A model generated the notes under the pieces. That model saw only the letters and a list, made by a program, of their open reading frames with translations, ran no database searches and was not told the origin of the DNA. From NCBI RefSeq assembly GCF_902652985.1, contig NC_047028.1:5952001-6016000 (forward strand): a stretch of DNA of 64,000 nucleotides, in the 5' to 3' direction. Each line of letters begins with the position of its first letter. Position 1 is the stretch's first letter. Source of the stretch: Pecten maximus (taxonomy: Eukaryota). The position numbers were made by a program, and so were the translations under genes. This document shows positions 1-6,511 of this stretch, in pieces.

Positions 1-1897
1 ATTATGTAATACATTGTAAAATATAAGCCCCACTTTACAAACTGAGTATGTTACAGGAGTGGATTTCTCAAATAGAATTTATTACACGAGTTCAATAACA
101 ATAACAAGAGCGCCCATTTGCTTCTAGAGCAACTTTGAAGTTGATCTAGTCATTTATGCAGACACTAAGCTGATCACTCTTTTATTCGAATATCAGAGCA
201 GACTTGATTCATTCATGTAAATAATTATCATATGTAGTCCTTCATACCAGCATACAATTGGCCCTACATCAGGTTTAAGACTGTCTTTGGTATCGAGAAA
301 TCATTATTTAATGATTTTAACACATGTATGTCAAGGTCACTCATTTGAACAAATTTGGTAGCCCTTCATCCCAGTATGCTAAAGGTGCTAAATTTTTCAA
401 GTCTCTTTAGCCTATTAGACCACAGTGACTTTGAAAGTAGGTCACAGTCATCAATTTGAACAAACTAAGAAGCCCTTCACCCCAGCATGCTACAGGTTCC
501 ATATCAAGTTCCTTGGCCTCAAGGTTATTGAGAAGTCATCTCACACTTTCAGCCTATTTGACCCCTACGACTCTGAATGAAGGTCGAGGCCATTCATTTG
601 AACAAACTTGGTGGCCCTCAACTGCAGCATTCTACAGATCTTTTATCGATTCTCTGGGCATCTTGGTAATTCAGAACAAATTGTATAAAGATTTAAGCAT
701 ATTTGACCCCTGTGACTTAGAATGTATGTCAAGGTCATTCATGTGAACAAACTTGGTAGTCCTTCACCCTAGCATGCTACAGGACCAATACCTTGTCTCT
801 GTGCTTGACAGTTATTGAGGTGAAGTTGTTTAACTCTTTCCGTACTCACTTGAATCTCGCGGTCGCTACCGGAAGCTGTTTCGGGGTTGGTCCTTTGCGC
901 ATATCCAAGTGTGACGTAATTCCGAGTGGTAGCACATGTGTCGCCCATGTGCTTTTGACCGAGTTGCATTCGATGTTGATTTGCGACTCTGCGGTGCTTC
1001 AGATATCGGTAAGTTTCATTTTTAACTGCTAACTATTACATGAAATAACGATAGATGAATGTATGTGGTTATTTGTGTTGGAAATTGTGAAACGAACCAG
1101 TAAAATGACGAGAGATATCATGACTGTTTTTCTTTTCAATGGCGATCGGTGAATCGTTGTGTACTCGTGTTCATGTCTTTTATAAACAACGTAGTTATGA
1201 TTTTAAAGTTACCAGACGATTTATAATACAAACCTTTATAATTATTGACGATATTTCTTGATATCCAATCATATTTTAGCGTATAAGAGCGATCGAAAAC
1301 TAATAATCATTATTCTGAATAGTCGTAGTTTCGTATTCGTTTTTTCTTGTTTACTTTCGGTTTTGATTTTTTGTAAAAAAATTTGCTACAGCAAATGAAT
1401 TGACAGTACACCTTGATCGATTATTCTCCATTGCATTATTTAATTCTGTTTGTAGATTGGCTCCGTTTACTACCTAAAACACTTACGATTTTGAATAAAT
1501 TAACTGATTTTGAACAAACTGTAGTACTTTACAATGTCCTATATTTTCTTACGTATGAAAATGATCGGATCCATTTACTTATTATAACACTCATCTCTTA
1601 CCTTGTTGTTGCTTGAAAATCAACACATAATATCCTCTTATTAACACTTGACTTGGGAGGGGGATGAGATGTAATTGATTGATAATTTACTTATAAATAC
1701 TTAAAATATAGATTGTGACCAGTATAACTGGATGCTTAGAAACAGAATTTCCCTGATAGAACATCCATGCACACAGACATTTACATGTCCCAGCAGTTGC
1801 TTTAGTGCCTCTATCATTACCACCATCAGATTTCGATTTCATGCCCTAAGTCTTTGTCAGTAGGCTCCCATCACCAACATTTCTCTGAATAAACTGA

Positions 1898-2009
1898 TGT
1901 AGCGGAACTGGACCGGGTCGATCATCGGCGACCAGGTAGCTCAATCGGTAGAGCATCCGACTAGTGTTCGAGCCCCGGTCTGGCCGTACATTTTCCCACT
2001 CCTACTACA
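1898..2009 (+). mobile_element. 112-bp tRNA-derived insert with TGT..ACA ends (solo-LTR-like or SINE-like) inside the piggyBac
   Basis: A-box TAGCTCAATCGGTAGAGC and B-box GTTCGAGCCC, with an imperfect acceptor stem GACCAGG/TCTGGCC (1930-1985). Termini are TGTAG..CTACA, flanked by CTGA direct repeats (1894-1897, 2010-2013). Confidence 0.75.
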
Positions 2010-2508
2010 CTGATGTCTGTGTGTGGTTCAATGAATCTTCTTTATGATTTGTATTTGCATTTGAATTTTAAAGAGAAAGAAAGAGGAAAATAAATATTCT
2101 AATGATCTGAACTGGCAGTAAATCAATCAACAAACATAAATTGTAAAGTTTTGATAAATTTTGTATATTTTCTTGTAATTTTCTCTTCAGATATATACAG
2201 AAATTTGTGTCAGAAATAAAGATATAAAATATTTTAAAGATCATTCATTCATTCATTCATTCAAATCAGTACAACAAAATTCACTCTAGGATAAATATAA
2301 ATGTACTAACACATAACATCAGGATTCATTCTAACAAGCAAAATATTTAAAAATTATCAAACAGCTATGTACAAAAGTTGTCACTGATCATTTTTCAATA
2401 ACAAACAATCTGATGTTAACACAAACATTTGTAAGTGTATTGACATTACATAGTTTATAATGGTAAAAACCTGTCAAATTTGTGACCAATAATCTTGATT
2501 GTACATAT

Positions 2509-5500
2509 TTACAATTCATTTAATAGTGATTGGTGGTAGTCTTTAAAGCATCCAACACACAGTTTCACATTGCAATGTGAACATCCGGAAATCACTTCCC
2601 GGCGTCTGCCTGATTTCGAACACTGTCGACATCTTCCCTTTTTGTTCAGAATCTCCGGCCAGTGCTGGTGTCCAGTTGTATCCATTGTTGTTGGCTGTGC
2701 CTTCCTCTTCCTGGTGACCCTGGTCTCCCCAATCAACTGACGAGCCAGTTCCTGTCTGTAACTGATCTGTATGGATGGAAAATTAATTTGCAACTAAATG
2801 CACATAATTGATGGTAACTTGTTTCTTCTATGGACCAAAAATGCTTTTTGCTTTGTAGATTCTTTTTTTTTCAAAATGCTTTATTATTTTTTTATTTTTT
2901 TTTCAAATATTATTCACTAATCAAATCATTTAAGTCAAAAATTATCTCAAAATAAATCATTTAATTTCTTTTGTAAATAGAAAGACCAAAAGCTGAATGT
3001 ATAGATCTAAAGCTCCTGTTTTTTTCTTCAAATTTTGGTCTCATTTGGATCTATTATTTACCTGTGTCCTTATCTTTTCCTTTCCAGTCCGTGTGGTTAG
3101 CTTGTGATTCGGAGACTCCTTCATAAGCAAAAAGGAGTTGACAATGGCGGTATCCAGCAGGAAGTAGAAAAGGTACTTCCACCATTTGAGTGACTTCCTA
3201 CTGCAGGAGTACTGCATCCTGAGCTGATCCGCCCTATCGACCGCATTCATACGCGAACCGTAGAGCTGAACTGCTTCAGGTGCCAGGGAGACATGTGTTG
3301 TGCCGTCTTTCTTCTTCCGGCTTACCTCACTAAGTTTTGTGGCGTCTACATTCGTGTATAAGAAATTTACCTGAAGAAAAAATGTTGAAAACTAGAAATG
3401 TTTTGCCTTGTTCAATCAACAGCACTAGCCAAAACACTACACTGATATAACACTTTGAGATGTTATCAGATAATTTATTTGACAGAGTTTCCTCTGACCT
3501 CGACACCAGCTAAAGACATTATGATAGTCAGAAAATAAACAACGAGGACTTTTTCCCTGATGATTTGTTCAACTTTCCATCAATAAAGCATTATCAGTGT
3601 GTTAGATATATACTCACTTGTTTGTTGTCAAACCAAGCAGATGTGCTGAGGGGTCCCTTCTGCATAGACAAATGGTCTCCCTTCTTCTTCACACAACCTT
3701 TCTGCAGCTCCTTTGGATATCCCTGTCGAGTTGCCCTCACAGTACCGCAAGCATATATACCATCCTGAAGCAGCCTGGTGAAGAGGGCAGGGCTGGAGAA
3801 GAAGTTGTCCATGTACAGATGGTGGTTCTTGTTTAGCATGTCCCTGCTAAGGTCAAGAACAACCCTTCCCGCTAGTCCTACTTCTCGTTCACCATCTGGG
3901 TTTCCTGCACGCCCCGTATATACCTGGAACTGGTGGACATAACCATTTGAGGAATCTGCCTTCTCCCACACCTATTTGAAACATGAAAATAAATCAGTTT
4001 TGCTTTTACATACTTTTTTTATATCATTGCAACCTCGTAATTATATATTTTGATAAGATATCTTTTATTCTTGATAAATAGTCCAGAATATAAAATAATA
4101 TGAACTCTTCAACCAACTCGTGTTTTTTCTTACTTTATATTTTGTGTAGAAATTTATTTTGAAATTTGATTTTCATTACAATACATACCTTTATTCCAAA
4201 CTTGACAGGTTTAGCAGGTAGATACTGCTTGAATCCTAGGCGTCCTTTGTAAGCAATCATTGCTTCATCTATGGCAACATCTCGTCCTAGGTTCCATTCA
4301 CGTCGTATGTAAGTCTGGACATTGGTCATGAAGGAACGAATGTGATGAAGTTTATCATGGCCAGGTTGTCCGCGTGGGATGACTGTAGTTGAATCGCTTA
4401 GATGGAAGTACTGCAGAAGTTTCTCAAATCTGTACAATATGAAATTAATATTGGATATATATACCAGGGTATTGCAATAATTATTTTTTTAAATCATGAA
4501 TATCTGCTAGATAAACTTATCTTCATCAACATGATTTTTTTTGTTATCAATTTTGATATTTTATTTAATATTTATGATGATTCATTCAAATGAATGAAAT
4601 ATGTTTTATTTTAATTCTAGTTTCGAAATGAATAAATTTTTAATTTAATATGTGTTCAGTTTGATTTTATATGAAAATATGGTAAAATAAATATTCTAGG
4701 CTCTTTGATAAATCCCTTTTAGACTTGCGCAAGTCCAGTGTTAATCAGATCTACATTTATTATAAGCTTAGACTGAAAATATTATTCCTAAGTAGATAAT
4801 TAATGTCACTACTTTATTCAAATGGGTTTATTCATATATATTTATATATAACATTATAGTTAGCATTGTATTATGAAATATTTTATATATTTTTTTCATC
4901 GTGACCGATATCTTCGAACAGCTGATCGAGATCTATTTTTAGTAACAACTAACTGTACAAGTTTTGCTTCTCATTAGTTATTTACATTACTTGGGTATGA
5001 TTATCTTACCTTGGTCGTGTCATAATACAAGGAAGTGACGTCTTAAACAACCAGTCTTGGCTCCAATACAGTTTATAGTTGGGCAGGTCCAAAATTGACA
5101 TGAGAATATGTATCCCAACGAAAGCCTTCATCTCACTTGGTGACGTCACGCTCCACTTCGAGTCCGGCTTCGATGCTGTCTTCTGCGATGCGTAGAGATT
5201 TGTCTGTGTGGTCATCAATTGAAACAAGGTGAATGGGAAAAGTAGGGTGAAGAAGTCGATTTCTTTCTTCCCTTCGTCAAGTACATTCACGGGTCCCGTT
5301 GGTTGGTCGAACTCGTCTATGACTACCGGCTTTAGATTATGGCTCCATGATGATGCAGGTACGTCGATTTCATTCACGGTATTTATCAGATGGCCGAGTG
5401 GCATTAAATCAGCTAATGGCTCATCATCATCTGATGACCATTGGATATCGGAACCATCAGAATCATCTGATAACTCTTCAGGGCCGAAACCTTCAAAATC

Positions 5501-5557
5501 TGAGTCATTTTCGTCTGTGTCCCAGTTGAAATCGAAAGTGGAATCCGAGTCCGCCAT
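2509..5557 (-). CDS. piggyBac (PGBD4-like) DDD transposase, 5 exons, 569 aa
   Basis: Exons 5557-5010, 4429-4189, 3971-3618, 3370-3062 and 2766-2509, all GT-AG, join into one open frame of 1710 nt. Features: acidic N-terminus, RFEKLLQYFHL, catalytic AIDEAM / YMDNFFSS / VDRADQ, KWWKYLF, and a C-terminal Cys-rich domain (CRQC..CSHCNVKLCVGCFKDYH). Confidence 0.95.
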
Positions 5558-5736
5558 CTTTGTTGTCAGTGTACACAGAGCCGGTGAAAACGCACCGATA
5601 ATTAACCACATGACCTAATTAGCCAATTAATACGCGTGTAACAAATGAAACAAAGCATCATCTTCATATTTTTAATAATTTTTATTGGCTCATTATACAT
5701 GTCGTCTGCTCATTACAACCTATCAACACACGTGTC

Positions 5737-5846
5737 TCACGACGTGTGTACTCGTCACAAAGGATGGAAGGCATGTTTACTGCGACGAGTGTAATCGTCG
5801 TGAAGGATACGGGAACACTTTTTTGTGACGCGTATAGTCGTCGTGA
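5737..5846. repeat. piggyBac subterminal palindromic motifs (3 copies of a GACG-N6-TCGTC-type motif)
   Basis: 5737-5758 tcacgacgtgtgtactcgtcac, 5782-5802 gcgacgagtgtaatcgtcgtga and 5825-5846 gtgacgcgtatagtcgtcgtga. The first copy is inverted relative to the other two. Confidence 0.8.
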
Positions 5847-6511
5847 GTACGGAAAGAGTTAAAGGATAAAGTTGATGCTGGCCAGACGGACACTGTACTA
5901 CAGCATAAGCTCACTTTGTGCTTCGGGCAGGTGAGCTAGTAATTAACGAGTCTTTAGTCTCATGGTATATAAAAATTGTCTAATTATTGTCTAATAAATT
6001 CCATGATATAGTCATCAGTGTATGATCCTACTATCACATGTTAATTAAACTCATATTTATGAGAATTTAAATGAAAACTTTCAAACTAATTTTCATATAT
6101 AAGACGGGCTTCTATTAAAGCAGCATTTTTTTCTCTACAGAGACAATTGGTGACATAAAATACATACGTCACTACACTGTTAAACATAACAAATAAACAT
6201 CATCTGAAATAGATGTAACAGATATACACCTGTGGTACCTACATACTTATTTTGATTTAACTAAGTATTAGTCATTACATTCTGAAATAGTTTCAGATGG
6301 CATAGCCAGAAAGAAATGGAATAGTGATTTCAAAAGCTATCAAACGGAGAAATGATCTGAACAGACGGACAGCTGATCGGGTGATTCTTAAATGCCACTG
6401 CTCTCTCTAGATGTGTGGCCCTAACTACACAACATTTCAAAGGGGCAATGAATGTAACCAAAATGTACATTAAAGGACAAATAAAGACATGTACATGGAA
6501 TGCACTCTCTG

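Follow-up and report, generated by a model that had tools for sequence, protein, structure and literature searches.

An intact, recently mobile piggyBac element with an intron-split transposase gene in the scallop Pecten maximus

Results

The element and its ends

We analysed a 64,000-nucleotide stretch of the Pecten maximus genome (contig NC_047028.1 of assembly GCF_902652985.1, positions 5,952,001 to 6,016,000; C14:5952001-6016000, hereafter the window), which contains a 5,025-bp piggyBac element at 834-5858, bordered by TTAA at 830-833 and 5859-5862. A first-pass annotation of this sequence had described perfect 16-bp terminal inverted repeats (TIRs) within a TTAA duplication, and both were seen on direct reading and in an inverted-repeat scan, where 829-849 and 5843-5863 were complementary over all 21 nt (100%), corresponding to T, TTAA and the 16-bp TIR CTCTTTCCGTACTCAC. 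The CTCTTT start of the TIR, regarded in the annotation as non-canonical, proved to lie within the published motif: a survey of 157 piggyBac-like elements gives the TIR start as C[C/A/T][C/A/T][T/G/A][T/A/G][T/G/A] (PMC5381638). The perfect TIR of the element begins with C and, at 16 bp, falls in the published range of about 12-19 bp.

The right end carries three direct subterminal repeats with a 43-bp spacing (5733-5760, 5776-5803 and 5819-5846). A CGACG..CGTCG palindrome lies inside every one of them, and the repeat nearest the end extends into the TIR. No subterminal direct repeats of this kind were found at the left end. Asymmetric ends and subterminal repeats are usual in the piggyBac superfamily (PMC5381638), and the right-end repeats are putative binding sites for the transposase.

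A transposase gene in five exons

No long open reading frame (ORF) is present in the element, the longest being 201 aa. The warning in the first-pass annotation that ORF-based scans would miss it is a fair one, given that a curated bivalve transposable element (TE) library required ORFs of >300 aa (PMC10294476). The five minus-strand exons (Table 1) translate cleanly, and their lengths of 548, 241, 354, 309 and 258 nt add up to 1,710 nt, or 569 codons and a stop. An Arg codon is split as AG/A at the junction of exons 1 and 2, and the three remaining junctions are in phase 0. All four introns are of the GT..AG type with donors of good consensus (AAG/GTAAGA, AAG/GTATGT, CAA/GTGAGT and CAG/GTAAAT), and the GC content is 43-50% in the exons and 22-34% in the introns. 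An in-frame ATG lies upstream at 5609-5611 with the frame open, and would add 18 residues (587 aa) if the transcript started further upstream; homologues begin at the position of the 5557 ATG.

Protein comparisons were made exon by exon. Exons 1-4 matched the Pfam profile PF13843 (DDE_Tnp_1_7) colinearly at positions 3-79, 82-157, 159-273 and 274-349 of 349, with E-values of 1.8e-13 to 4.4e-26, providing the DDE core and its DDD triad. The three catalytic Asp motifs named in the annotation were recovered in alignments with proteins of known systems: IDE of exon 2 aligned with D268, and VDRAD of exon 4 with D447/D450, of T. ni piggyBac (6x67), and YMDNFF of exon 3 aligned with YMDNYY of piggyBat (9c0f). 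For the full Cys-rich C-terminal domain that had also been claimed, the comparisons gave mixed results. Exon 5 shows the pattern C-x2-C-x12-C-x2-C-x4-C-x2-C-x4-H (6 Cys and His), and aligned end to end with the tails of intronless paralogues at 46-47% identity. Its alignment with the piggyBat C-terminal domain, on the other hand, was weak (E = 0.38), and a Pfam scan returned no piggyBac zinc-ribbon family at E <= 0.01.

The exons abut without gaps on an intronless 578-aa paralogue (L041:676-2412), with exon 2 at 196-275, exon 3 at 276-389, exon 4 at 391-493 and exon 5 at 494-577. Such paralogues in the same genome (for example C19:29978080, with a 578-aa ORF) are colinear with the whole protein at 31-55% identity per exon and share its length and Cys-rich tail, and they have a continuous ORF where the window transposase has four introns. 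The five-exon gene model is real, with Pfam, the intronless paralogue and RNA as three independent lines of evidence.

Splicing of the transposase RNA

The RNA evidence consists of contigs from runs with coded tissues, and carries no information on strand, start, end, level or splicing ratio. A contig of 1,137 nt, found in run X3 and in run X17, joins 5010/4429, 4189/3971, 3618/3370 and 3062/2766 exactly, the last of these junctions being supported by 26 nt. X3 and X17 were guessed to be RNA, have zero depth over 784-1887, and are possibly one data set filed twice. The contig shows 0 differences from the window, and therefore carries the window alleles where a second genomic copy, on C17 (see below), differs; the window base is present at all 6 such sites that it covers (3071, 3097, 3270, 3722, 3815 and 4261). 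A contig of X1, a random-primed total-RNA library from a different study, covers exon 1 sequence and the adjoining 152 nt of intron 1. These results show that the four transposase introns are removed by splicing, as the proposal of a splicing-dependent transposase had required, and that the window copy, the only intact one in the reference assembly, is the allele found as correctly spliced RNA.

Copies, age and mobility

Genome searches covered 918,306,378 bases in 3,983 contigs, and the parts that were read were free of N runs. We found a second full-length copy at C17:20143940-20148964. Over 5,025 bp, this copy and that of the window are set apart by 17 substitutions and by two 1-bp indels, both in introns (99.6% identity, 0.34% divergence). 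It has its own TTAA on both sides, and its flanks are unrelated to those of the window (27% identity, the level expected by chance), which rules out a segmental duplication or a haplotig as its origin. A near-identical copy at an unrelated TTAA site agrees with the young age proposed in the first-pass annotation. Of the differences between the two copies, seven fall in exons. Two of these are silent and five alter the protein, one of the five being a nonsense codon in exon 3 of the C17 copy (window position 3722, residue 84 of the exon). With older copies as outgroup, six of the six polarisable exonic differences were derived in C17, and the window copy therefore retains the ancestral coding sequence. 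The changes from copy to copy would be the neutral decay expected for a transposon.

Contigs of X1, which come from another animal, cross both ends of the element (830 and 5864) into flanks matching neither C14 nor C17. The flanking 30-mers each map once, to C1:28792292-28792321 and C1:28792256-28792285, 6 bp apart, and the reference at this site is without the element, reading ...GACGACTGTCA TTAA AGCTCATGC... (that is, ...GTCA TTAA AGCTCATG...) with a single clean TTAA. The insertion at C1 is thus polymorphic, present in one animal and absent from the reference, with TTAA duplicated exactly, and no other observation speaks as strongly for recent mobility. The reference allele at C1 is an empty site for this third insertion. 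The clean TTAA in the reference fits either an allele that never received the insertion or a precise excision.

Older copies on C19, C2029 and C16 are rearranged fragments with 77-82% identity by BLAST, or 86-91% when gap-free aligned columns are compared. The introns of the window element are present in these fragments too, and are therefore as old as the family. In the C16 copy, which is about 81% identical, the TTAA, the 16-bp TIR and the next ~20 bases are unchanged. Taken together, the near-identical copies, the unrelated TTAA sites and the insertion absent from the reference show very recent movement of the family within this species of scallop.

A spliced antisense RNA

A new result of this analysis is a spliced plus-strand RNA that is antisense to transposase exons 5, 4 and 3. 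Runs X1 and X2, from different studies, both contain the plus-strand GT..AG joints 1008/2650 and 2813/3088. A coding role was considered and found to be unsupported: the exon-wise frames reach at most about 65 codons (ATG 973 to a stop at 2809-2811), and antisense exon C has no open stretch of >84 codons. Since its exon-wise reading frames are short, we take this RNA to be non-coding.

There is close to an even chance that the antisense RNA is read-through from host promoters outside particular insertions, joined at cryptic splice sites within the element. The X1 contig with the 1008 to 2650 joint extends about 1,450 nt into the flank of the C1 site, which suggests such read-through, and donor position 1009 reads GA in the old C16 copy. 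However, the same two joints occur in X2, where the contig ends at 933, within the element; the donor CGG/GTAAGT is strong, and three of the four antisense splice sites are retained in older copies. A role of this RNA in silencing, through double-stranded RNA, is a matter of speculation.

Related piggyBac families

An exon 3 query gave 146 matches in the genome, most of them in open frames of 400-600 aa at 38-54% identity, and these frames mark most of the matches as belonging to intronless families. A second intron-bearing piggyBac, referred to here as family 2, was found at L047:2741-9389 (C4:48867741-48874389). It is 6.65 kb long and present in several copies of ~99% identity, and its ORF pieces appear intact in L047. 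Family 2 is bordered by TTAA and the TIR CTCTTTCCGTACCGT, whose first 12 bases, CTCTTTCCGTAC, are the same as in the window TIR, and its protein is closer to that of the window (exon 2, 68%; exon 4, 67%). It has three introns, the first of which lies in the same split Arg codon and in the same phase as intron 1 of the window element. The others lie elsewhere: one directly follows YTGRAG, the other is placed about 10 residues upstream of window intron 3, and family 2 reads through the positions of window introns 2, 3 and 4. As only intron 1 is common to the two families, intron 1 is old and the remaining introns are lineage-specific.

In L048 (C8:8164000-8173999), a family 2 copy is flanked on both sides by the same ~40-bp sequence GATGGCGGATATGGCGGCCATCTTGGATTTCAGACCAAT and has no TTAA at its left border; this arrangement may be tandem or nested. 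Another candidate for an intron-bearing family, at C17:24794707, proved to be a decayed copy of an intronless type.

We also searched 1.84 billion representative proteins with exon 3. There was one close match, P0002, an exon-sized ORF of 149 aa on a Logan contig that is 84% identical and continues on both sides in intron-like sequence resembling the same splice sites; all others were at or below 58%. With exon 1, one match was obtained in a word-based protein search, at 49% identity. P0001, an exon-1-like ORF of 213 aa on an ENA contig and 49% identical, reads through the position of window intron 1 and breaks about 10 residues past it, at a GTATGT-like codon pair. This is a hint that other organisms have piggyBacs whose introns lie at still different positions.

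Short non-autonomous partners

TTAA followed by the 16-bp TIR occurs 122 times in the genome, and TTAA followed by the first 12 TIR bases 271 times; the reversed controls gave 0 in both cases. Examination of 5 of the 122 sites (L049-L053, for example C1:20738857-20739660) showed six elements, 782-804 bp in length and each bordered by TTAA at either end, which we describe as miniature inverted-repeat transposable elements (MITEs). One end of these ~0.79-kb MITEs is 84-88% identical to window 5733-5862, and the other is 81-82% identical to window 830-897 with 2 mismatches in the TIR. The six copies are 94-99% identical among themselves. In L052, two MITE copies lie 1.75 kb apart with identical flanks and look like a local duplication. 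TTAA borders are a feature of the window and C17 copies, of the filled and empty C1 alleles and of all six MITEs. The MITE family has therefore been amplified by a transposase that recognises the shared ends, and the window family is the putative source of that transposase.

Insertion environment and nested repeat

The element is inserted at the end of an array of ~145-bp tandem repeats (window 540-833 and 5885-5946), which is part of a dispersed composite repeat; a first look at the genome gave >4,000 candidates for it. Over 600-783, RNA contigs reach a depth in the thousands. In paralogous copies of the array, the sequence that flanks the window element on the right follows within 30-65 bp of the array end, which provides an approximate paralogous empty site for the window insertion.

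A SINE-like (short interspersed element-like) insert is nested in the 3' arm of the element (Table 1). Both young copies contain it, and the older copies are continuous across that point without it. It has very many copies in the genome, which match element positions 1065-1188 and are often paired ~250 bp apart. This tRNA-like insert also has very high RNA contig depth; ARAGORN and Rfam, run on 500-6200, gave no tRNA or RNA family that matched it.

Table 1. Features of the element in window coordinates (UTR, untranslated region).
Feature	Position	Strand	Remarks
Left TTAA target-site duplication	830..833	.	
Left 16-bp TIR CTCTTTCCGTACTCAC	834..849	+	Side of transposase 3' end; 100% complementary to 5843-5858
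Left arm, GC-rich (51%)	834..1008	+	Also first seen exon of antisense RNA; donor CGG/GTAAGT at 1008/1009
Antisense RNA, first seen exon	ends at 1008	+	Joint 1007->2649 (cut +1), X1 and X2
Nested 116-bp SINE-like repeat	1901..2016	.	8-bp direct repeat ACTGATGT at 1893-1900 and 2009-2016
3' UTR	2209..2508	-	Contigs stop near 2191-2209, not necessarily the RNA end
Exon 5	2509..2766	-	85 codons and stop at 2509-2511; Cys-rich C-terminal domain
Antisense RNA, exon B	2650..2813	+	Overlaps transposase exon 5; joints 1007->2649 and 2812->3087
Intron 4	2767..3061	-	295 nt, phase 0, 24% GC; RNA joint 2766->3062 in X3/X17 (side 26 nt)
Exon 4	3062..3370	-	103 codons; third catalytic Asp in VDRAD
Antisense RNA, exon C	3088..4048	+	Unspliced over exon 4, intron 3 and exon 3; to 3973 in X1, 4048 in X2
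Intron 3	3371..3617	-	247 nt, phase 0; RNA joint 3368->3616 (cut +2)
Exon 3	3618..3971	-	118 codons; second catalytic Asp in YMDNFF
Intron 2	3972..4188	-	217 nt, phase 0; RNA joint 3969->4187 (cut +2)
Exon 2	4189..4429	-	241 nt; first catalytic Asp in AIDEA
Intron 1	4430..5009	-	580 nt, phase 2; RNA joint 4429->5010
Exon 1	5010..5557	-	ATG 5555-5557; acidic N-terminus; DDE_Tnp_1_7 start
5' UTR and presumed promoter	5558..5842	-	RNA contigs extend to 5636
Right 16-bp TIR	5843..5858	-	Side of transposase 5' end
Right TTAA target-site duplication	5859..5862	.	

Discussion

The element described here is very probably an intact, young piggyBac of the autonomous type that depends on splicing, is expressed and has been mobile recently. 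That it is still able to transpose is a separate claim, which we favour with rather less confidence. Transcription would start on the minus strand, from the right subterminal region, and the host spliceosome excises the four GT-AG introns, the step that the RNA contigs document. By homology, the mRNA encodes a 569-aa transposase in which a DDE_Tnp_1_7 core with its DDD triad is followed by a putative Cys-rich C-terminal domain. If the protein acts as T. ni piggyBac and piggyBat do, it would attach to the TIRs of 16 bp and to the subterminal repeats, which are asymmetric, excise the element at its TTAA borders and reinsert it at another TTAA.

Introns in piggyBac-derived genes have been described mostly in the domesticated PGBD5, PGM and TPB2, and the survey of piggyBac-like elements treats introns for domesticated genes only (PMC5381638). 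The first-pass annotation pointed to intronless ORFs in the well-studied active piggyBacs, but this does not hold for active piggyBacs in general. Pokey, a member of the superfamily in Daphnia, has a 68-bp GT-AG intron near its 3' end that was proven by reverse transcription PCR, and in yeast the element is excised by its own transposase (PMC3575242, PMC3315735). Compared by description rather than by sequence, Pokey (4-10 kb) and the scallop element are alike in their TTAA target, 16-bp terminal repeats, long non-coding arms, subterminal repeats and a transposase gene split by GT-AG introns. Pokey has one intron, whereas the scallop element has four, of 217-580 nt, across the catalytic core, and unlike Pokey it shows no evident targeting of rDNA. 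T. ni piggyBac (6x67/6x68) and piggyBat (9c0f) share with it TTAA, short TIRs starting with C, the DDE_Tnp_1_7 domain, equivalents of D268/D346/D447(+D450), a C-terminal Cys-rich domain, putative in the scallop protein, and asymmetric ends. They differ in their size of about 2.5 kb, in a transposase encoded by one uninterrupted ORF and in TIRs that begin CCC rather than CTC, and local alignments of the scallop exons to 6x67/9c0f are weakly significant (E 1.4e-7 to 0.38). The element is a well-documented new member of the piggyBac superfamily and not a new kind of element.

Given where introns have mostly been described in this superfamily, they could be read as the mark of a domesticated, PGBD-like host gene, and there is a precedent in the intron-bearing Tc1-like genes of pteriomorph bivalves, which were argued to be domesticated (10.1101/656579). 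A gene of the PGBD type would be a single orthologous copy that lacks TIRs and is under purifying selection. Here the TIRs are intact and perfect, with a TTAA duplication, and there are at least three insertion sites: two on different chromosomes with unrelated flanks and a third that is polymorphic, with an empty allele. Most changes between the copies are non-synonymous, a stop among them, and the MITE partners bear the same ends. The multiple insertion sites and the empty allele rule out a domesticated single-copy gene, and we regard domestication as extremely improbable. Control of the kind known for the P element, in which one or more introns would be removed in the germline only and active transposase made in some tissues only, is made possible by the four introns; contigs of X1 and X2 span sense intron 3 without splicing, and X1 also enters intron 1. 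However, the contig covering intron 3 has plus-strand GT..AG joints, which marks it as antisense RNA and not as sense RNA with a retained intron. Unspliced precursor is, moreover, expected in a library such as X1, and the contigs come from coded tissues and give no splicing ratios. We consider such control very unlikely.

A more serious alternative is that the element died recently, the family having been mobile until lately and the window transposase being non-functional or fully silenced, so that the polymorphism would be a leftover or the work of another family. The reference holds one intact copy, the other young copy has a stop codon and the older ones are rearranged fragments. Family 2 is more numerous and has the 12-nt TIR core in common, and the antisense RNA over three coding exons could feed silencing. 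On the other hand, the window copy is ancestral at every polarisable exonic difference and is transcribed and correctly spliced, the copies diverge by 0.34% and the third insertion site is still polymorphic. On balance we find this explanation somewhat unlikely, and prefer a young, recently mobile element with an intact, splicing-dependent transposase.

Several observations weigh against this preferred reading. There is a single intact copy in the reference, and no transposition or excision event was directly observed; the polymorphic insertion at C1 is known from RNA-library contigs alone, and the element could have been mobilised in trans, given the 12 TIR bases shared with family 2. Contigs do not place the promoter or the ends of the RNA, nor do they give the proportion of it that is spliced. 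The in-frame upstream ATG makes the N-terminus of the transposase ambiguous, the C-terminal domain lacks a match to a Pfam zinc-ribbon family, and two sampled copies are too few for an inference on selection.

To our knowledge, current mobility is supported for only a few piggyBacs of animals and documented for none in bivalves. An intact, expressed and spliced allele, a polymorphic insertion and a short non-autonomous partner together make up a donor/helper pair that is ready for testing. The moth piggyBac is the only transposon vector reported for bivalves in the literature that we searched (PMC6054966); use of the scallop element as a transgenesis tool is speculation at this stage. The absence of a long ORF also indicates that the ORF-length filters of bivalve TE libraries (PMC10294476) overlook whole autonomous families. 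This genome contains two or more families with one intron in common and others that differ, a small and tractable case of intron turnover in a selfish gene. A bolder possibility, which we hold to be unlikely, is that the element is still active, its output being controlled jointly by host splicing and by an antisense RNA that arises in its own left arm and spans exons 5-3, and that it belongs to a scallop clade that has kept one old intron and repeatedly gained others. If this is true, the element would be a natural system in which to study how DNA transposons gain introns, and bivalve transgenesis would have a native vector.

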